Shown: piece after piece, positions 7,015-55,800 of the stretch
Numbering within the stretch: the first letter of the stretch is position 1
Layout: the number at the start of each line of letters is the position of its first letter
Made by a program: the position numbers and the translations under genes
Origin: Trichoplax adhaerens
Taxonomy: Eukaryota > Animalia > Placozoa
NCBI RefSeq assembly: GCF_000150275.1
Contig: NW_002060957.1
Span: 722,170 to 786,169 of the forward strand
Length of the DNA stretch: 64,000 nucleotides
Reading direction: 5' to 3'
The notes under the pieces: model-generated
Told to the model about the DNA's origin: nothing
What the model saw: the letters and a program-made list of their open reading frames with translations, nothing else
Database searches by the model: none

Positions 7015-10000
7015 ATGGATAAATCCAGTAAACGAACAGCATCTGGACTACGAGTTTATAAAATTGTCTTATTAGGAGAAGGTGGAGTAGGAAAATCAGG
7101 TAACGTCGATTTCCATACGAATTATAATTATCACCGAATCTCGTCATGTTGTGCATTAATTGAAGTATTTGCATTTTTTTTAACATTCTCTTCGTTTATA
7201 GTGATAATCTACTTTTAAAATCTTAATCTAATATAGTTATATACGAATCATCAGGTTATCGTTACTACATCGGCTATAACCAATTAAGGATTGACTTCTT
7301 TAGTTTGGCTCTTTAACATGTTCATTTTTATAATTTTAGATACTTTATTGCAGTTTTGTAGAATACAACATTGATATTCATCTAATCGTCATTCTATTTT
7401 ATATTCCGGCTATTTAATTTAAAATTCTCAACTTATTAAGTCGAAACACAATTGCCATTGTCGATATGCTTCATTTCTACATTAAAAAGCCTCCGAGATC
7501 AACTTTTAAATGGAACGAAAACCTATTAATTCTGCTGTAGAAAGGATTGATGAAGCAATTGCCATCATCTTCAAACTTTTGCTAGAGGCTTCTTCAAACC
7601 TGTTGCTCTTCTTATCGATTATTAATTATGAAGCACATAATCGATTTCATCCTCCATTCTACAGACCAAAGTAGCGGCAATGACCATTACAATCTAACAT
7701 TTAAAATCTATGAGTTGAAATGGCAGTGCCACCGTAGTAATTGTATGGCAAAATGGGGCTGTACTAACTGTAAAACAACGTTACATTTAGATGCCCTTCC
7801 TATACTGTACACTTACGTCGATAGTATCCTACAATGAAAACCGATTTAACACGTATTGTAGTGATATTGATCAAATAAATCATTCAAGATATAGATTATT
7901 CCATTAGAATTATTCATCATCGTCATTATTTAATAAACTTATATGGCGGCTCAATAAATGCTTGTGTTAAGCAAACGGAGTAATTATTGATGAATGAACG
8001 TTAGGGACCGCATAAAAAAGGACCGAGAGCACGTCGTAAAATTTATTAATGAAAATAAAATTTCGTTTTCCTATAGCTTGTGAGTAAGCTATCACTTGTT
8101 AATCGAACTACTATCATTTCATCTTGCTTCTTATTATTGCTAATATCTTAGTTTTTAATCGATCTAGAGCACTTTCATGCTACTTATTTTAGTATGATTT
8201 CTTCATACAACACGTAGTCAGGAATAGACGTGAAACAGCAGTATTTTTTGTTGCCATATCCTATTTTTGAGTCCATACAGGGAGTAATTAATTCAGTATT
8301 CATTTTCATCTATTAGTGACAGTTAGCACTTAGCAGTAATATCATCAATTTCCTCTGCTACTATGATTAAAATCGTTCTGATTCATGCTGTGTAGTCCAT
8401 CACACCATATCTATCAGTATAACATATCTTTGCCGGGTATATATAAATATTTGATTACAAATTCTAGGGAAATGTAACTGTTTGATATTCGAAATCAGAA
8501 TGTGTTTACTAACCCAAGTAATATACAAATATCCATGATCAAGATAGGGGTGTATTTTATCAATGTCAATTTGATCAACGTTCAAATTTTGAAATATTAT
8601 AAACGAGCTTCTGGCCTTTTTATAAGATTCGACAACGACTTAGGTGTAGCTATCGTTCAGGTTACTACTGTTAAATTCGAAATTCTGTTTCTTGATAGCT
8701 ATGTCGAAGTCAGATGCACTTTTCATGTATCTTCTTAGTGGATTGATCAGCTGCACTGTTGATGTCAAAGTCCCATCGTAAATAATCCACGGTATTAGTA
8801 ATCTATACTGTTATTTCCACGCTATATCATGCTAGTAACTCTACCGGAAAGAGCCTCTATTAAATAAAAGCCAGAAACGATCTCATATTTCACTTACTCT
8901 AGAATCATGCTTATTGCCGTCTATAATGAAATGAAACAGATCTACACTTTAAAAACGGTAACATGATTTATTATTATCTTTTTTTCTTTTAATATCAGTC
9001 TCTTTTCACAAATAGGTTGTATAGATGAATTAGAACGGAATATAATCATGTACCTTTTTTCAAGCTAAATCTAATTTTATACTTTAATATCTAAACATGC
9101 CAACGTATAGTTACCATAATTTCCTATTAATAGCAATATCATTTCTAGCGAGAAGTTCTACTAATTAATTAGAATAATTGATAACTTCCTCTGATCATAA
9201 TCTATGTCTTGCTTCTAGCTGTTACATTGCAATTTGTCAACCATAGTTTCGTCGAACACCATGATCCCACTATAGGTAAATGATATTGTGATAATTGACT
9301 ACAGGCTCAAACGGTAAAGTTATCTAAGCCAGAGATTGGTCTAATAGTATGATTCTTTGTATTTAGAGAACTATCCGTCAACTAAAACGTAAATATTTTC
9401 TTCTGCTAATATTGATCAATACTGTATGTCATAAATAGAGGACGCATACCAACAACAAGCTGTGATTGATGGTGAAGCTGGTTTACTTGATATCTTGGAT
9501 ACAGCTGGACAGGTTGATTGTCAAATAATCTAATTCTGTAGGATAAAATTTCGTCATGGAGTGTTCATTTTAATAATTTAGCTCGATTGTATAGAAAAAC
9601 TTTAACTGAGCTTGATATATCATTTCTATATTATTTTTCAATTTAGGAAGAATTTACATCTATGAGAGAGCAGTATATGCGTGGTGGCGAAGGTTTTATC
9701 TTGGTTTATTCTATCACAGATAGAAGAAGCTTTGAAGAAATTTCCAATTATATCACTCATATCGAACGAGTAAGAAATTGTAACGATACACCAATTGTTA
9801 TTGTGGGCAATAAGTCTGATTTAGAACATCAAAGAGTAGTTAGTACAACTGATGGCCAGACTTTAGCACGGCAGCATAATTGCTCATTTTGGGAAACATC
9901 AGCAGCCTTGCGCCAATTTATTGACGAATCATTTCACGGCATCGTTAGAAAAATACGTGAAAAGGAAAAAATTACAGCAGCAAATGATAAAAGTAAGAAA

Positions 10001-10054
10001 AAAAGTAGTAAAGCCAATGCTGTCAAACGGCTGTTTAGTAAGCATAAGAAATAA
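7015..10054 (+). CDS. RIT1: Rit/Rin (RIT1/RIT2-like) Ras-family small GTPase, 4 coding exons
   Basis: Exons 7015-7099, 9219-9275, 9439-9512, 9647-10054 splice in frame via GT-AG. G1 GEGGVGKS, Rit-type effector loop HDPTIEDAY, G3 DTAGQ, G4 NKSD, G5 ETSA. Polybasic C-terminus (KRLFSKHKK*) without CAAX, as in Rit/Rin/Ric. Probably co-orthologous to RIT1 and RIT2. Confidence 0.92.
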
Positions 10055-40329: not shown

Positions 40330-40615
40330 AAGCTATTCCTTTACTTAATATCAGCTAAATGCTAAAATTGCTACTAAGATATATAATAGCTCGGAATTAT
40401 GCCACATCAATTCTTTCTTTGGTTACGTTCTAACTTTGCAGGCAGTGGTTGCTTATTGATTGAATAGAGTAGAATTTACTTACTACGGCGTTGATTTTAT
40501 AACGATAGTAAAGGTAAGACGTTACTCTATCTAATATCAGCTAATTACTACGATTGCTACAAGATATGTAATAGTATAGCATTACTCCATATTAATTCTT
40601 CCTTCAGCTACGTTA
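40330..40615. repeat. Diverged duplication of the stop-codon/3'UTR segment of the adjacent membrane-protein gene
   Basis: taatatcagctaaatgctaaaattgctactaagatatataatag...aattctttctttggttacgtt (~40345-40429) parallels taatatcagctaattactacgattgctacaagatatgtaatag...aattcttccttcagctacgtt (~40532-40614). Confidence 0.7.
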
Positions 40616-43600
40616 TTGAGATCCTGGCTGCTAGTTACAGCTGCTTTTATACTAAAACCGGCAAGTACAATCGCACTTAGTGTGGTAATAGTAGTGAATG
40701 CGTAAATGAATCCGTAATATGTCGTAATAAGACTAGTCTGATAATTCTGGTCAGCCAAAAATTCATAAACACTCATTGCCATCGCCCAAAAACTACCAGC
40801 GCTATTGAAAACATTGAGCACAAAGTATGCATATTTCTACATTTTAAAACGAGAACAAAGATAGTTCAGAGTTTGAGAATGGATTCTTTTAAACAAATGT
40901 AATCAATGCAATGCCCCACTTACTGCTAGTTCGTTGCTAGTAGATTGGATATCGATTCCGTATCTAGCTCCTACATAAGCCTACAGAAATGTTATTAATA
41001 ATTAAATTATGATCAAGGTGTCAGGCAGTCCATGCAATTTATCAAACTAAAATGATTTTCAATCGCATGATGTATTGCAATCAGTCATCACTATCATTAT
41101 AAATTTACCATGACTGAAACAATTAAAACAGGAAACCCATATGTGGGATAATTCATGACTGCGATATTAAAGATTCCAATCCCACTGACTATGACAGCAG
41201 TGCTCAGCATGCCGGCACTAGTAGTGTCAGTAATAGGTGTATTCCTATAAGTTGGTGTTTTATTTCTGACATCATCGGCAGCTATCATAGTGATTAATGA
41301 GATAGTAAATCCAAGGATAGTAAAGATTGCTTGAGATAGAGTTAAAGCCGTAAAATCGCCTCTTCGCCAGCCCGAATTTATTAGATTGCCAGTGAAGAAA
41401 ACAAGAAGACGAACGATAGAAACAACAGAAGCGGCACCAATTCCGGCGGTATAAGTGGTAAAAATCTTATGCCATATGTTCTAAAGCAATAAATGAAGCC
41501 TTTAATTTTCGAAAGGAGAGTAAAATACACCTTTTTAACTGCTGCCTTTCAACTATCGAATAGAAAGGTAACTTTAAAATAAAATTAAGCTCACCAAATT
41601 ACGAACACGTTTTTTTTCAGTAATGATACCTAGGATTCCAGTAGCAAAAAGCTAACGCGCAATTTTTAAATTAGACAATAATTAATTAATTAAAAATAAA
41701 TAAATGTTACTAAGCAAATCAATACTACGGATTAGCAGAGTTTCTATTTAGGAGAAGAATAAAGTATTGGTTGATTGAATGCGACTAAATAGACGTATTA
41801 AGTATCACTGACCAGAGCTGCGTGAAGATTAGCTGTTACGACATGATATAAAGGCCAACGTTCCACAAATAGAGTGATCGATATTCCAAAAATGATCAGG
41901 CCACATGTCATCATCGTCCAGGATAAGGCAGATTTGTTAAAAGGAGTCTGAATCAGTAAATAACCATCCTCATCCGAATGAATACGATGAACTTGCTTGA
42001 CAATCACGTAGATAGAAATTATTTCTATTATAATTATGCCAAGTACTGCCAATGCCATAGGCACAAAAAAGGCTACCGGTGAATTATAATTGCTTAAAAT
42101 CAAGACTAGCACCATTCTTGTTAGTGTTGCAGGTGATATTCCAGCAGTTATTATCGCTACAGCTGTAAGAGCGCAAGCCTATATTAATGAATATAAAGTA
42201 GAGGAATCATCGCAGTAGATATTAGTTACAGATATCTATTACGGCATTTAACATAAACATCCAGATGAAGTTACTTGTCGAGCTGATGATGAGCAATAAA
42301 GTCTAAGTTTGCTTACCTCAGTCACAGTGGATGAGATGAAATCTTTAACTTTTAGTAAAAGAACGCCATGAGTAATAGCCTGTAAATTTGATTCATCAAA
42401 AAGAATACGAATAATTTTGAATAATCATTTGAACAAATCCGTCTCGAAAAGTTAGATTTTATCTGTATAAAATAAAGCTGAAATACTATCGTGGCTGAGG
42501 CCAAGAAAATATACCATAGTTTATTGGCTTAGTAATTTCGTTGCATAAAATTCGTTACTTTATTTTGCAGTAGCATGTTCCATACAGTATCGTGAAATTG
42601 TGACCAGATTATTATCAATTGTATTGTATTAGTAAACTATTTCGCTTCCTTAAATTCTGTGGTTATGTGATAATTTATCTTAACGAAAAATTCTGCATCG
42701 AATATTTTACTTTTCTATAAAACTAAACTGAAACAGCCACTACGCGTAGTAAATCTTTTTAAGAGTGTATATATCTTTATGATATTAGCCAATGGCCTTA
42801 TTACGAAGTGAATTATACATTGCAATCAAAACAAGACAACAGCTAGATAACTGAAGTTGAAATTCACTAATTCTAACATCATCTACGATGCCGTACTTAT
42901 CTGCAAAGATTAAAATTAGTTTCTATAGTATTATCTAAGTAACACACATTGATATTTATTCGGCGCCTTGAATCTTGCTAGTGTAAATTTATTTAACAGA
43001 ATTTATTCTGCTCTTGAACTCATGATTTGATAGTTATTTCAATATTCTATATACAGTATCCTATGCTATCTTCTTACTTCAGTATTATGTCTATAAACAT
43101 TACTAAAACTTTATAATTATCTGTTGTAGGTAAGCTAAAACCAGAGTGGCAGTTAACATGCGCTTGCTACCTTACTATTGATACAATATTTGCCTGATGA
43201 TTTGCACTAGTTATACAGCTGTAGTTACACCTGTCGAAGGTTTGGTTTAAAAGTATGATAGAAGTAGAAAGCCAAGTAGCATTCGGTAATGTGGCATCCT
43301 AAGAATTTGTTCTATCGAAAATTTTAAATTCTCATCTGTTAGACTGCTAATTATAAGGGTAAAAATCTTATTTTTACAGCATAGTTCATTTTATTTTAGA
43401 CTTAAAACTGTTGTATATTATACCGAATATTATTTTTCGAACTGAGAAGATTAGCAGCGAGTCAGTTCTACAATTTACGTATACTGTAGATGCCAATGAT
43501 CATTTTGTCTTAAACTGACAAACCTTGACGGTAATAAATAAAAACCAATCGTGCTGATTAAAATAAAGAATAAAAATCAACTTACAAAAAGTTCCATAAC

Positions 43601-43735
43601 CCCAAGATCAATCATCACTGTATTTTCATGGCTTCGTAACATAGATTGATTAAAAATGAAAGTGAGAAGGCCACTAACTATAACATCTGCAGCTGCTATA
43701 AAGAGGCAAATACCCATAACGCGTTGCGAACTCAT
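40582..43735 (-). CDS. Copy A: ~439-aa, ~12-TM protein of three tandem MS4A/CD20-like four-helix modules, 7 exons, intact
   Basis: Exons 43735-43586, 42379-42317 (63 nt), 42178-41813, 41651-41595 (57 nt), 41480-41109, 40980-40924 (57 nt), 40836-40582. All introns are GT-AG and phase 0; no internal stop. Twelve hydrophobic stretches. Motifs LFATGILGIITEKK, YGFPVLIVSVMAYVG and VLNVFNSAG. The gene model is well supported; the family call is inference. Confidence 0.8.
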
Positions 43736-48199: not shown

Positions 48200-48484
48200 C
48201 TATCCTAGCGTTGAGGTAACACCTAAACAATTACACCCTGGGGATACTCTATTGCTTAAGTTATCCACGTCTTTGCTACTTCGAATAGCTGCTTTAATAC
48301 TGAAATAGGCGACTGGAATTAAACTAAGAATAGTGATGCTACCAAAAGCATAACGGAAGAAGAAAAAGGTCTTGAGAAGGCTAGTTTGATAGGATGCATG
48401 AGCCAAGAATTCATAGACGCTCATGCTGATTGCCCATATACTGCCAAAACTATTGAAAACGCTGAGAACGTAGTATGGATATTT
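48200..48484 (-). CDS. Terminal exon of another family paralog (closest to copy A exon 7); upstream exons absent or hidden in the gap
   Basis: Acceptor tacag, then KYPYYVLSVFNSFGSIWAISMSVYEFLAHASYQTSL...AYFSIKAAIRSSKD, versus copy A KYAYFVLNVFNSAGSFWAMAMSVYEFLADQNYQTSL...GFSIKAAVTSSQD. Confidence 0.75.
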   Translation of the reverse strand, partial: KYPYYVLSVFNSFGSIWAISMSVYEFLAHASYQTSLLKTFFFFRYAFGSITILSLIPVAYFSIKAAIRSSKDVDNLSNRVSPGCNCLGVTSTLG

Positions 48485-48498
48485 CTGTATTGCAAACA

Positions 48499-48548
48499 NN
48501 NNNNNNNNNNNNNNNNNNNNNNNNNNNNNNNNNNNNNNNNNNNNNNNN
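48499..48548. other. Assembly gap (50 N)
   Basis: Run of N directly in the sequence. Confidence 1.
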
Positions 48549-49188
48549 TAAAGGTATAAGGCATTATTAGAAATTTATTATGTAGCAGTAATAAATATAG
48601 TATCATCTTACTTATAAAAATCTAAGTGGTTTCTTTAATTAGTCTTAGCCAAATCTAAATCTTATGAAAATAAACCACAGCGTTCAAAGTATCAGCTTAA
48701 ATAAAAATAAATCGTATCTTTTCGTTATTATTAGTCAGTCTAGGCCTGTTACAGGCCTAGTAGGTTACATAATTATCCAATGTAGACAAGGCTAGTAATG
48801 GAATTTTAAATAACCGAAATTTAGGCTTAAATCTACGGTACGAACTTTATATTTCTATAGAGAATGATTCATAAATTATCACTTTTCCCAAGTGTGTAAC
48901 TTTCACTATCCCAATTGTTACGCCCGTAATTTGAAGTTATCGTTACTTATCTCGTATACTATTCTGCGATATAATTGGTCATCTTACAGTGAAATGAAAA
49001 TCTACTTCGCTGCATAAGCCAAGGTCACACACTATTAGTTACTTCAATGACAATTATAATTCACGACAATTATATTTATCGCTGTCAAATTTTAGCTCGT
49101 AAAATTGCAACCGTTTTATATAGTTATATTAATAACATACACGTATACTCGCAAAGAGCGTTTCACTTTATGGAAAGATGTACGAGAA

Positions 49189-49775
49189 ATACGTCTTAGT
49201 TTCAAGCTTTGTCTAATTCCGGTATATATTTTTACATCCTACTTTCACGGTGCTATCTCACGATAGATTAGTTACCGATGTTTTGTAGTAAAGCTTTATT
49301 TAGATTACGAGATAGTTCTTATGGTACTTTACATACCTGGTGCCGTAATATGTGATTGTGACTAATTAGCATGAGATTGTATATTTTTATCGCAATCGTT
49401 CGGCGAATGAACATATTGCAATCTAACTGCCTTGCATTAATCATCAAATATCTATGACATTAAATTACACCGTTTTAATTAATTAGGTGTCTAAAATAAA
49501 TTTACTGCCGGATCTTATTTGTACTTATGATACATCTTTACTTCAAGCTTTATCTGATTCTCGATTATATTTTATAACCTACCGTCACGATTCTATCTCA
49601 CGGTAGTTAGTAATATTTAATGACATAACTTTATTTAGATTACGAGATAGCTCATACTTTGTACATCTCATGCTATAATATATGATTGTGACTAATTCAC
49701 ATTAGATTGCATATTGTATCTTGATGGTTGTGAAAGGATATATCATAATCTAACTGCCTTGCGTTAATCATTAAA
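49189..49775 (+). repeat. Diverged tandem duplication, ~335-bp period
   Basis: Shared blocks ttcaagcttt.tct, ctatctcacg.tag, ctttatttagattacgagatag, gattgtgactaatt and aatctaactgccttgc.ttaatca recur at ~49190-49448 and ~49530-49775. Confidence 0.85.
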
Positions 49776-50717
49776 GAGCAATAGCCTAATCTAAAGGAAG
49801 TTCGTTTGATAGTCTACTGAGATTAAAGTAAATTTAAAACTGTAGTAAATCTCTATACTTTGAGAAAGGAGCTATCGTAACATGTTAGAATCGTACTGTA
49901 ATGAATAATGTAAATCTTACCGTAACGTATAACTTTGTGTTGTAACAATCCAAAGTTATTCATAACGCCAAAGATTTGTACACGACAGCCAATTAATATT
50001 CATGACCACATTTGAGATTAATGACCTGCACTATCCCGTGTATCCCTTATCTATACGTATTACAGAGCATAAGGTCAGAAATATGTAGTATAAAATATGT
50101 TTCATTATGCGCAACAATTCTATAAAGAGTCGCTATAATTAGGTTTGCCTATCGCAATCGCATGTCGTGACAATTTGTTAGGCTTATTTTCGCATTAATG
50201 TGGTCAGTTCTTAATTAGATCGATATAATAAATGCTGATAAAGACACAAGTTTTACTTTTTAATGTTAGATACAGGGACTAGATTATTAATTTCTAAGAT
50301 TTTGATATAATTGTGCTATATCTAGGTAGTATAGCGTAACATTATAGTCATGAGGTATATATATGTTATGTAACCTATACACAAGTAATTTCATACAAAA
50401 ATAAATGAAAGCTGTCTTACTCAACAGTCTGCTAACGGCCCATCAGGTTATGGTATCTATTGTTATTATTGAATGAATAATATAGCTGCCACTAGTATTG
50501 ACCTATATTTGGCTGATGAAAAATTGACTTAGCTCATATATAATCAGGGTAATGTAACTGACAGCTCACTCTTATTGATGGAATGACGATTATTGTATTA
50601 TTGTTAACTTTAGACGAATAATACCAAATACTGTACAATAAGGTAAAAATATTATTAACAGTTACCGTAGTTGTATGATCAAGTAACTAAAAGCAAATTT
50701 TGCATTCTAGTAATAGT

Positions 50718-51737
50718 CTAAATTGCAAAAGATGCTATATTTTGGGCCTTACTTTGGCAATAGAAGCCTACTTTCTTATTCCAATTCTTGTCTATGTCAC
50801 AACACATTTGGTTTGTATAGCGGGCAAGGAGTTGAACGGTAGCAAACGTAAAAGCGATACCAATTCCGGTAGTAAAGGTAGTAAAAGTCTTTAGCCAACC
50901 ATTCTAAATTTTATGAATTGGCCGTTAGTGCTAAAATAGTGAAATAACACTGTAGTGTATTTCTCACTGTACTTCACATTACTAACCTACAATAAAGCAT
51001 AACTTTTATAAACCCTTTGTTGTAATAATCGTAAATGGCGACTAAATCTCAATCCTCTGAGATATCGAACCCTCCATCACAAACATGATAGTACTTTAAA
51101 AGGGATAGATTATAATGTAGTTAGGCTAACTAATCTGGTAGCTTGCTTTTTATGGGTAACTATACTAAGAATTCGAGTAGCAAAGAACTGAATATTTAAA
51201 ATAAAGTAAATAATGACTTTAAGTAGCAATTTATAACACAATGAAATTTGATTAAAATATAAATTTAAAGGCTGTTAATTTCCAACACTGTTAAAAAATG
51301 TTTATCATCTTCTATTTACCATAGCTGCATGAGAATTAGCTACGATGAGATGATAAAAAGGCCAATATATGAAATATATTGCAGTAGATATTCCAGAAAG
51401 GGTAAGACTTATAAATATCATCATACAAGATACAGTAACCCTACTGAATGGAGTTTGAAAGAGAATATAATTATTATCGCTCGAATGGATTCGCTGAAAT
51501 TGCTTGGTAGCGATGTAGATAGAGATGATTCCAACAGCAATTAAGGCAACTGCAGTAGATGATATAGAAATAAAAATTGGAGCCATAGGATAGTGCGTCC
51601 GATAAAAAACAGAAAACGAGCAGATTTTACAGTATATCTATTCATAATAAATCTTTATGAAGAGTTAGATGGTTCTCAAATATCTTAGCAGTAGTGATAT
51701 ATTCTTGCAAGAAGATTTGCAGATCCAGGTAGTAACC
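50718..51737 (-). pseudogene. Copy B: fragmentary paralog with exon 3-, 4- and 5-like segments only
   Basis: Exon-3-like segment ending 51320 (QRIHSSDNNYILFQTPF...WPFYHLIVANSHAAM) but interrupted upstream by a stop. 57-nt exon 51187-51131 (FFATRILSIVTHKKQATRL, both conserved Gly lost). Exon-5-like segment from 50903 diverges after ~30 codons and reaches TAG at 50720-50718. Confidence 0.65.
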
Positions 51738-52823: not shown

Positions 52824-55800
52824 TTAAGCTTTTACTTCTGATATTTCATCTTCTAGACTACGTACCGCAAGTACAGCTGATTTAATACTAAAATAAGCAA
52901 TCAAAACCATGGACAATATATGTGATGGGATGACAATTGCAGGAATTATCCAGCTTGCCAAATGAAGATTGGTATAGGAATAAGGTTGAACCAAATACGT
53001 AAAAAGTATCAAGCCTATGGTGTACAGCGATCCTATAGAGTTGCAAATATTTAAGGCAAAATATGGCCGATCCTATTTGAAACAGTTCCAAAAGGATTAG
53101 AATTTATGATAATCAATTGTTATATAGTTGAACAACGATATTCAATATCTTATAGTTCATTTAAGCTGTGCTAACCAAGATTTGTCCATCCACATAATGT
53201 TTATCAAGTCCAATCGTTGCTGTAGTAAAAGTCTAATCAATAGCAAATACGAGTAATTAGCAACATATTAGTCGAGACTACAACTGCTGCATTACTTCTA
53301 TTCAGTTTTTAACATACAGTAACAGCTATAAATAGAGTTGGGAAACCCCAAATTTCCTGGTTTAGTAGGCCTAAACTTAATATCCCAATACCACCGGTGA
53401 GCAATGCACTAGCTAGCATACAAATATTGTTAGAATCACTTCTAGGCGAGTATCTTATAGAATGATCAAAAATATCTCTAGGATAACGCGATGCTTTTGC
53501 TCCAATTAATGCTACAATTAATCCAATAATAGCAATGGCAGTGTAGAGAAGACGAAGGGTAGCAAATTGGTTGTCTTTCCACAGTAGATCTTTCTTATTG
53601 TTGTTAATATATGTCAGGGTTTGTAAAACAAATAGAATGGAAGTGATACAAATTCCAGATGTAATGGTAGCTATTACCTTGTACCAGGCATCCTATTCAA
53701 TTAACAAGTGGAGCATTAACTCGATGATAATTTACGATCACATGATTTCGTAATATACTCAAATGTAACTGCCAAGTGCTACGATAAAAATATGAGAGCA
53801 TGCAACGTTCAGTTATTCCATTAACTATGGTATAACATCTTACTTTAGCACGTTTACTCTTTAATATTATATAAATGTGAGGTATTACTAAAGCGCAATC
53901 TATAACTCACATAACACACCAAAAGTAGAGACACACTGAGAGAGAGAGAATCATTACTAGAGCTATATTCGACAAGCTATAGTTAAAAAGAATTTTTAGT
54001 CTGATTTTAAAAAAAATTGTTAGAAGCGATATACTAACCAATTCGGCAACATTTTTTTGATATGAGATTATTCCAATCACTCCGTTCGATAATAGCTAAA
54101 AAAAAGGATGAAATAGTCTTACGATCGATTGGCTGGCTTGGCAGTTAAACTGACTAGCTCCAATTCTCAACAGATCTTAATCTCGTATCATTTTGGTTCG
54201 CTTGGTAGTTGAACCTTGGTAGTTACAATATTTGTAAGATCTACAGCATGTTATTAGTTATTGTAGTTATCATATTTGATTATAGCTTTTGCTAGGAAAT
54301 AAAATAATTTAATACATGGGGCTTACTGATGTAGCGTATCAAACCCTAGCAGAATGATCATGAAGCCTATTAGATCTAACTCAAAAATCATATTTTTAGT
54401 TTGATATCGATGTAGATCATTAGAACTACTAGTAAAAATTTAAAAGACGGAATCTGAGACCTAACTAAGCCAGCGTCAAAGCACTCTTTCAAAGATCTTT
54501 ACAGCTCCATTTGAAATGGTCATAACTGCTGGTTAGATACATATCAACAACAAAGATTGATGACAAATATTACTACCAGGACCTTACCATTATCGAGAAT
54601 TTAAAGTGCTGGCAAAATAATCAAATTAAGATGAAAGTGATTAATCCTAACTACACCTTATATTAGCTAAGCTGCTAGGCTGAAGCAAAGAAATGAAAAC
54701 AGATTCCTTCAGATAACTAAGAATATGATCAAAGACCTTGCTAACATAATTAATTACAACTATTACATGGTATTAAAATTAAAATTATCAAAACTGATAG
54801 CCTTATCTAGCTAAAATACTATGAAAGTAATATTTGACAGATACGTATTTCATAGCTGCCCTCAAAAAGTTACAACAGCTAATAAGAAATAAAATCTGAT
54901 TATTAATTTCATTTGGAAGTGAGAATGACCATAAATATAACTATTATTGCTACGAGATAATGCTAATGGTCACTTTAATACGACTTTTACGTTATACAAG
55001 ACGACTATAATTAGGATTCTCAAAATTGCATACCATAACTGCGCTAAAATTAGTTGCTGCAACTCCATAATTTTGGTGAGATCGGATATTCAGTACTATA
55101 CCAATGCTAAACATCGCAATGCCGATCAAAATCATGACGATCGACAGTACTGGTTTATTAAAAATGGATATGGTCATATATGATGTACTTGGATCTGGAA
55201 CTATTCGCTTGGCCAGGTTAACCACGACAATGAAAGAGATTATACCGATAATTGCAGTGCTGATAATTAAGATTATGATAGGAACTGAGAAAGCAGAAAG
55301 TCTATAATCGAGTCCCATGACTACTTGTCGGGCTACATAAGTAGGACATGACACAATAGAGACTACTCCAAACGTTACTATGGCAGATGCCTGTAATTTA
55401 ATTTGCGTATAAAAAAAAATGAGCGAATAAAATATTCAATCCTAAGTATATCATTTACTTATCATTATTAAGGCATAGTAAGAGCTAAAACTTACCTGAG
55501 ATGGTGAAATACTTGAAAACTGGCTTAACTTTACGACAAAGAGGGAATTCGCTAGAGCCTAAAATAAAACGTTCATCTATGACTCATATCCTATAAATCA
55601 CATTGTTATGAATTATAAACCGAAAATATTTTCACCCTGCAAATCATCTTGATAGATCTGATATTACTGATTTTAATGCATAAACTCTTCTCGCTTAAAT
55701 CTGTTTAACCTAAGCCCATTTCTATTATCATACACTATAATAAAGTCACTGATTGAGTGAGCTTATCAAAGTAAAATTGATCAGATCATCTAAATTTATT

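Follow-up and report, generated by a model that had tools for sequence, protein, structure and literature searches.

Proteins of the CD20/MS4A type (PF04103), among them FcεRIβ (MS4A2) and CD20 (MS4A1), and likewise sarcospan have four transmembrane helices (TM1 to TM4) per unit and cytoplasmic termini. Of the solved members, FcεRIβ is part of the IgE receptor, sarcospan is part of the dystrophin complex and the CD20 dimer organises nanoclusters. A close structural resemblance of sarcospan to the CD20 family has been reported (PMC3599653). Chicken, platypus and opossum have polypeptides with 2 or 6 tandem MS4A units, and their head-to-tail arrangement was taken by the authors as support for oligomers as the working form (PMC2826416). 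In the same work Zuccolo et al. 2010 concluded that MS4A-like genes are lacking in invertebrates (PMC2826416). MLC1, a protein with eight helices (PF27925), is a trimer in detergent (PMC8633789). Here we analyse a gene of the placozoan Trichoplax adhaerens, located on the minus strand of a 64,000-nucleotide (nt) stretch of contig NW_002060957.1 (positions 722,170 to 786,169; below “the window”, to which all coordinates refer unless another contig is named). On balance, we read this seven-exon gene as coding for a 439-amino-acid (aa), 12-helix protein made of a triplicated unit of the CD20/MS4A/sarcospan-type superfamily, which would act within the membrane plane as adaptor or scaffold.

Compared with CD20/MS4A proteins, the Trichoplax protein has three units per chain, gives no Pfam or profile-profile match, was found in placozoans only and carries TM3 and TM4 of a unit on one exon. 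The signature motifs are barely recognisable, with TGILGIITEKK here versus SGxLS..K. In the tandem MS4A polypeptides several four-helix units of MS4A type likewise stand head to tail in one chain. These are, however, recent, are identified as MS4A by BLAST and comprise 2 or 6 units, whereas here three ancient and mutually unrecognisable units form a conserved architecture in a different phylum. Because such polypeptides are known, the concatemer as such is not new. New is that placozoans have an old, conserved three-unit architecture and that its units can no longer be recognised by sequence.

Gene structure and transcription

A preliminary description of this DNA had predicted an intact spliced protein of about 439 aa. 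When the exons were rebuilt from the sequence they were found as described: the gene extends from 43735 to 40585 on the minus strand and its seven exons join to a 439-aa product. All acceptors are AG, all donors are GT and the six introns are in phase 0 throughout. In the following list “module” denotes one of the three predicted four-helix blocks.

Exon 1: 43586..43735, minus strand, 50 aa with the ATG at 43733-43735; TM1 and first half of TM2 of module 1; donor GTAAGT, phase 0
Exon 2: 42317..42379, minus strand, 63-nt mini-exon, 21 aa; rest of TM2 and cytosolic KVKD loop of module 1; AG/GT, phase 0-0
Exon 3: 41813..42178, minus strand, 122 aa; TM3, TM4 and cytosolic linker of module 1, then TM1 and first half of TM2 of module 2, with the boundary of modules 1 and 2 near 41950
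Exon 4: 41595..41651, minus strand, 57-nt mini-exon LFATGILGIITEKKRVRNL; rest of TM2 and basic loop of module 2; AG/GT, phase 0-0
Exon 5: 41109..41480, minus strand, 124 aa; TM3, TM4 and linker of module 2, then TM1 and first half of TM2 of module 3, with the boundary of modules 2 and 3 near 41240
Exon 6: 40924..40980, minus strand, 57-nt mini-exon AYVGARYGIDIQSTSNELA; end of TM2 and cytosolic loop of module 3; AG/GT, phase 0-0
Exon 7: 40585..40836, minus strand, 84 aa; TM3, TM4 and C-terminal tail of module 3; stop codon at 40582-40584

The product aligns without a gap and with 48% identity to TrispH2_011665 (P0020), an independent 439-aa model of a paralog from Trichoplax sp. H2. Across its 439 residues it is 100% identical to the NCBI model TRIADDRAFT_60412 (P0023, 449 aa). 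The gene has hence been annotated before as one gene, the uncharacterized TRIADDRAFT_60412. The sole difference are 10 extra residues in P0023, which are encoded by the following element:

43524..43553, minus strand: 30-nt AG/GT-flanked frame HDWFLFITVK, the extra exon of the NCBI/JGI model TRIADDRAFT_60412

This frame is present only in P0023. The H2 ortholog and all paralogs lack it, and it would interrupt the gapless alignment to P0020. Judging from these comparisons it is probably a prediction artefact and not a real exon. The H2 ortholog itself, TrispH2_010549 (P0024, partial), is 99% identical to our product and joins exon 1 straight to exon 2. P0024 takes an internal acceptor in exon 7, by which the first 30 residues of this exon are dropped.

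We further looked at RNA sequencing data from runs X6 and X7. Since these are assembled contigs from runs that also contain unspliced sequence, they show presence and not level. Five spliced joints were found: 40836|40924, 40979|41108 (+1), 41480|41595, 41651|41813 and 42177|42316 (+1). They are precisely introns 6, 5, 4, 3 and 2 and all read CT..AC on the plus strand. The last joint was present in both runs, one X6 contig was spliced at both edges of exon 6, and overlapping contigs link exon 2 to exon 7. The joint 40836|40924, seen in X6, favours the acceptor at 40836 over the internal acceptor of P0024. A point against the gene model is that the joint of exons 1 and 2 was not seen among the contigs of the two runs, so that splicing by RNA, which had been suggested as a check, is borne out for introns 2-6 but not for intron 1. 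The junction of exons 1 and 2 is supported by P0024, by the paralogs (exon 1 is kept in paralogs B, D, E and F, see below) and by the gapless alignment to P0020. Given this alignment, the identity to P0023, the H2 ortholog and the RNA joints, the gene is real and transcribed.

Contigs of the RNA runs also cover parts of the 1.2-kb intron 1. One X7 contig (record 27), spliced at intron 2, extends 263 nt beyond exon 2 on its upstream side without splicing (42380-42642, minus strand), and more contigs lie inside this intron. They could represent intron retention, pre-mRNA, DNA carry-over or an alternative start.

Twelve helices in three units

Hydropathy predicts 12 long helices, arranged four by four in three groups, and the secondary structure of the AlphaFold model agrees. 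The three blocks of four hydrophobic segments noticed at the outset were thereby recovered, and so was the triplicated exon unit with mini-exons of 57-63 nt and exclusively phase-0 introns. Each unit consists of one exon part with TM1 and half of TM2, a mini-exon (63, 57 and 57 nt in modules 1, 2 and 3), and an exon with TM3 and TM4 that continues into TM1 and half of TM2 of the next unit. The intron junctions fall at residues 50/193/336 and 71/212/355, with a period of 143 (141) residues. Because the period of the exon plan is exact, the helices form three groups of four and the plan is conserved across the family, we consider triplication of a four-helix unit well supported as the origin of the protein, an event that on these sequence features very probably took place.

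In 13 family members K+R amounts to 15.8 in the predicted inside loops versus 4.5 in the outside loops. This fits a predicted topology in which both termini are cytoplasmic and the three units have the same orientation. In this topology the outside loops are all just 4-13 residues long. Polar residues are conserved within helices (Q236, D282 and the N/H of TM6). Tetraspanins (PF00335) were considered and rejected: the TM3-TM4 loops of the modules have 5-13 residues without CCG, and there was no Pfam match. Between modules 1 and 2 we noticed a short motif:

41951..41974, minus strand: DEDGYLLI, aa 140-147, in the cytosolic linker of modules 1 and 2, an acidic stretch with YxxΦ, read from the sequence

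Related motifs occur in paralogs (DDNEYSLV, SDKEYSIL, YMTI); paralogs E and F are without one. DEDGYLLI resembles a hemi-immunoreceptor tyrosine-based activation motif (hemITAM) or a tyrosine sorting signal, and might fit a role in trafficking or phosphotyrosine signalling.

Exon plan of single-unit CD20-like genes in Trichoplax

We searched the genome (105.6 Mb on 1414 AT-rich contigs; the window is G000:C1400:722170-786169) in six frames with PF04103. Three loci were found, none of them belonging to the family of triple genes:

Single-unit CD20-like genes, a tandem pair and one more gene: G000:C1409:5090390-5097000 (L020) and C1408 at ~3618 kb (L016, L021)

Two of the first exons matched PF04103 positions 1-40 in hmmscan (E 1.9e-4 and 3.2e-4), and these matches end exactly at the phase-0 donor after “APIW(S/M)G..”. 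In all three genes a 57-nt AG/GT mini-exon comes next (YLMAGIFAIVSRKTRNIHL, YFIAGILSACSRKTKDIHL and YFISGVLCVYTTSKKTYCM), followed by one exon with TM3 and TM4. The mini-exon of module 2, LFATGILGIITEKKRVRNL, is equal to CD20-like mini-exons such as YLMAGIFAIVSRKTRNIHL and YFIAGILSACSRKTKDIHL in size, phase and position. The plan with a phase-0 intron in TM2, a 57-nt phase-0 exon and then TM3 is present in all three modules (with 63 nt in module 1) as well as in the three CD20-like genes. The single-unit genes accordingly share with the triple gene the genome, the three-exon core plan and the 19-aa mini-exon. They differ in having one unit, and PF04103 detects their first exons but nothing in the triple family. 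For the one CD20-like gene that we searched, no annotated protein turned up; the first exons of the CD20-like genes retrieved nothing useful from the PDB by sequence, and a homology search seeded with a CD20-like exon returned one unannotated open reading frame (ORF) only.

Structural comparison

A first AlphaFold run on the shallow alignment A2 reached a predicted local distance difference test score (pLDDT) of 42, and its Foldseek list (G-protein-coupled receptors, template modelling score or TM-score 0.15-0.29) was meaningless and was discarded. An alignment A1, in which short exon fragments were misplaced, served only as word source for a homology search. For the second run foreign exons were added (alignment A3, all fragments in register). 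The resulting model of P0020 has a pLDDT of 68.7 and a predicted TM-score (pTM) of 0.70, with values of 75-90 for modules 2 and 3. The four top structural matches all belong, or presumably belong, to the CD20 family and all cover model residues 147-292, which is module 2. From the entry titles and as the sole four-helix subunits we take 9c3c_n and 8yt8_S to be sarcospan, and 8k7t_B and 8yvu_F to be FcεRIβ. The structural scores of CD20 itself were 11.3 and 10.4.

Models of the ESM Atlas reach a pTM of 0.79 for P0020 and of 0.81 for P0025, a paralog with 30% identity. The best structural neighbour of P0025 was a CD20 cluster (TM-score 0.63 over 143 residues, query 141-283, again module 2), and P0020 matched an MS4A6C-like cluster with a TM-score of 0.56. 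By language-model features the top named neighbours of both paralogs in the Atlas were CD20 and MLC1 (0.81-0.83). One Atlas cluster is annotated as both MLC1 and CD20, which hints that MLC1, with 8 helices versus 12 here, is itself a two-unit relative. Together these models suggest that the fold of module 2 resembles the CD20 family. The structure check proposed in the preliminary description gave top matches of the expected kind for one of the three modules, in a ranking that does not set them apart from tetraspanin and MARVEL structures.

Evidence against a CD20-type origin

Several results weigh against a triplicated unit of CD20 type. Within the AlphaFold model, module 1 is poor, with a pLDDT of 36-60. 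Tetraspanin and MARVEL structures scored nearly as high as MS4A. Modules 1 and 3 behaved as separate four-helix units in the structure searches and had no CD20-specific neighbour. The ESM Atlas feature scores of 0.82-0.83 count as leads only. In hmmscan at E<=10 there was no match to PF04103 on exons 1, 2, 3, 5 and 7, nor on the eight database models P0002, P0004, P0005, P0009, P0020, P0023, P0024 and P0025; the Pfam check suggested for the modules thus turned out negative. Neither the family profile nor P0020 retrieved CD20, FcεRIβ or sarcospan in sequence searches of the PDB. We then used hhalign on the locally joined model with an alignment of the three Trichoplax CD20-like genes as reference and obtained scores of 18-22 for the modules. 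The best alignment (score 21.6, P 0.03) covers residues 149-293, i.e. module 2, with both intron junctions in matching columns. A reversed-sequence control reached 20.6, which places the comparison of modules with CD20-like genes at noise level. Module against module hhalign was not significant either (P 0.016-0.2, partly out of register). The CD20-like genes were scored by a single exon each and stay below the Pfam cut-off for whole proteins. Finally, the presumed counterpart in vertebrate MS4A genes is a 57-nt phase-0 exon for the second half of TM2, and our search found no specific literature on the MS4A exon plan or on placozoan MS4A.

A few other signals were set aside. phmmer showed weak in-register second stretches between the regions of exon 5 and exon 3, which at 0-6 bits are not evidence. 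Pfam matches of exons and full-length members to Cyclin_C, DUF7139, 7TM_GPCR_Srd and others are at chance level and below the cut-offs, and the PDB sequence matches 2lyi_A, light-harvesting chains and ribosomal P2 are due to chance.

Since the exon plan is shared and highly specific, and since the structural ranking is consistent, though it does not discriminate, we regard descent of the unit from the CD20/MS4A/sarcospan-type superfamily as likely, though unproven by sequence statistics. The label “MS4A/CD20-like” given to the protein beforehand is thus partly supported, in an indirect way, by the exon plan shared with the Trichoplax CD20-like genes; it found no backing in Pfam, hhalign and PDB sequence comparisons.

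Alternative explanations

The protein could be specific to placozoans and consist of three up-and-down four-helix units unrelated to CD20/MS4A. The fold match would then reflect generic geometry and the exon plan coincidence or convergence. The near-equal scores of tetraspanin and MARVEL structures are what such an explanation would lead one to expect, yet the four top structural matches are all members or presumed members of the CD20 family, and the independent Atlas model of the 30%-identical paralog again ranks a CD20 cluster first. A phase-0 split of TM2 followed by a 57-nt phase-0 exon is moreover a very specific plan to be met in 3/3 modules and in 3/3 CD20-like genes. We consider an unrelated origin doubtful, while giving it some weight. 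At the other extreme, three adjacent genes with four helices each, or pieces of pseudogenes, might have been misjoined in the gene model. The public models do disagree, P0023 having the additional 10-aa exon and P0024 lacking 30 aa of exon 7, and the first splice joint is missing from the RNA contigs. The module boundaries, however, lie within exons 3 and 5 and are inseparable by any choice of splicing; the fusion is therefore no splicing or annotation artefact. Overlapping spliced RNA contigs chain exons 2-3-4-5-6-7, and the same architecture recurs in 6 or more intact paralogs and on 7 foreign contigs. A misjoined model is hardly credible.

Twelve helices with conserved polar residues inside them (those named above) would also suit a transporter or channel, either a secondary carrier of 6+6 helices or three four-helix arcs around pores, the layout of heme-copper oxidase subunit I. 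The latter has 12 helices, classically in three arcs of four. Indeed the best whole-chain Foldseek matches in the PDB are to Thermus ba3 oxidase subunit I (e.g. 3s8f_A) with a probability of 0.87-0.97, and the literature links CD20, TMEM176 and MLC1 to ion fluxes. Against this, ba3 oxidase matches with a TM-score of only 0.33-0.36 and is unrelated in sequence, and a conserved set of metal ligands was not noticed, although not checked systematically; the models would support an analogy of layout at most, not kinship. MFS and other 6+6 transporters were rejected, as the period of exons and helices is 4+4+4 and not 6+6, no Pfam transporter matched the exons or the eight database models, and the Atlas models of MFS, APC and CLC proteins match with TM-scores of just 0.31-0.33. 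A transporter or channel of either type is in our view improbable. Compared with these alternatives we keep to the triplicated CD20-type unit.

A family of triple genes in placozoans

Exon 5 matches 8 loci in the Trichoplax genome. Exon models were built for ten loci, of which six or seven are intact (A to G) and three are degenerate (H, I and J). The intact loci, i.e. A (the gene described here), B, C, D, E, F and G, share the plan of seven exons, with 28-57% identity between paralogs. Searching 1.84 billion representative proteins with exon 5 we obtained only 13 matches. Each is either a Trichoplax model or an ORF without annotation on a short contig of a marine metagenome assembly or sequencing-run assembly. 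Seven of these foreign placozoan contigs were modelled and have exons 4 and 6 of 57 nt, an exon 5 of ~124 aa and an exon 7 of ~85 aa. The family looks restricted to placozoans, tandemly arrayed and fast-diverging.

Two more copies are located in the window. Paralog G (52827-55558, minus strand) is intact, 28% identical, has the same exon plan and is the ortholog of TrispH2_011664; its exon 1 was not found in the stretch that was searched. This paralog carries the motif ALNICNS, which had erroneously been assigned to the gene at 40585..43735. Copy H (48203-51637, minus strand) is degenerate, with a truncated exon 3, a 57-nt exon resembling exon 4 and no exons 1, 2 or 5. Its exon 7 is nearly identical to exon 7 of paralog B (at ~692 kb of the same contig). 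Copy H is a pseudogene or a recent chimera.

Near-copies of genes of this contig were observed on the 45-kb contig G000:C1365 (loci L010-L012): B and D share 95-98% identity, I closely resembles G, and J closely resembles H. This contig represents an unmerged haplotype or, alternatively, a recent segmental duplication. In the ESM Atlas, P0020 as query further retrieved a cluster of 828-aa nematode proteins without a Pfam family, which matches the whole 12-helix model (TM-score 0.70 by query, 413 residues aligned). On these models the nematode cluster is a candidate relative of the triple architecture beyond the placozoans.

Possible mechanism and function

We propose that an ancestral four-helix unit of the CD20/MS4A/sarcospan-type tetraspan superfamily was triplicated within one chain. 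Each unit would have retained the gene plan in which a phase-0 intron splits TM2 midway, a 57-nt phase-0 exon encodes the rest of TM2 and the basic loop, and TM3 and TM4 come next. The best-modelled unit would share its fold with FcεRIβ and the chains taken to be sarcospan. Because the three units would have diverged past sequence recognition, the chain would in effect be a fixed hetero-oligomer of three different tetraspan bundles. Like FcεRIβ, CD20 and sarcospan, it would act within the membrane plane and serve other membrane proteins as an auxiliary subunit, an adaptor or scaffold. This role is suggested by the tiny outside loops and by the conserved parts being helices and cytosolic loops.

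By analogy, a function as adaptor or scaffold in the form of such a fixed hetero-oligomer appears plausible, if still tentative. A channel-like function is considerably less likely and a chemoreceptor-like one somewhat less likely again. Outside loops of 4-13 aa speak rather for an adaptor or scaffold, or possibly for a channel, than for a receptor with an ectodomain. The preliminary description had spoken of a pseudo-heterotrimer acting as receptor or channel, which is speculation. In an elaborate form of this idea the three bundles would be arranged as a pseudo-threefold assembly around a central polar pathway, or would offer three faces for ligands or partners. The tandem, fast-diverging family would then supply an animal that has no neurons with a range of receptors or channels for sensing or recognition, as an ancient counterpart of MS4A chemoreceptors and of trimeric MLC1. 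We regard this as quite unlikely.

Should the kinship be true, CD20/MS4A-type tetraspans and their intron positions would date to the base of animals. Placozoans would have converted the usual non-covalent oligomer into a single chain of three units, a natural experiment on MS4A-type assembly, and placozoan membrane proteins now listed as “uncharacterized” would receive a name and a testable fold. With homology statistically unproven, the practical value is limited for now.

Other features of the window

Between 28000 and 34000 the G+C content is 0.37-0.43 compared with ~0.31 elsewhere, and this region has no long open frame. A 130-aa open frame on the plus strand at 9662-10054 resembles the C-terminal two thirds of a small GTPase of the Ras family and is presumably an exon of a neighbouring gene.

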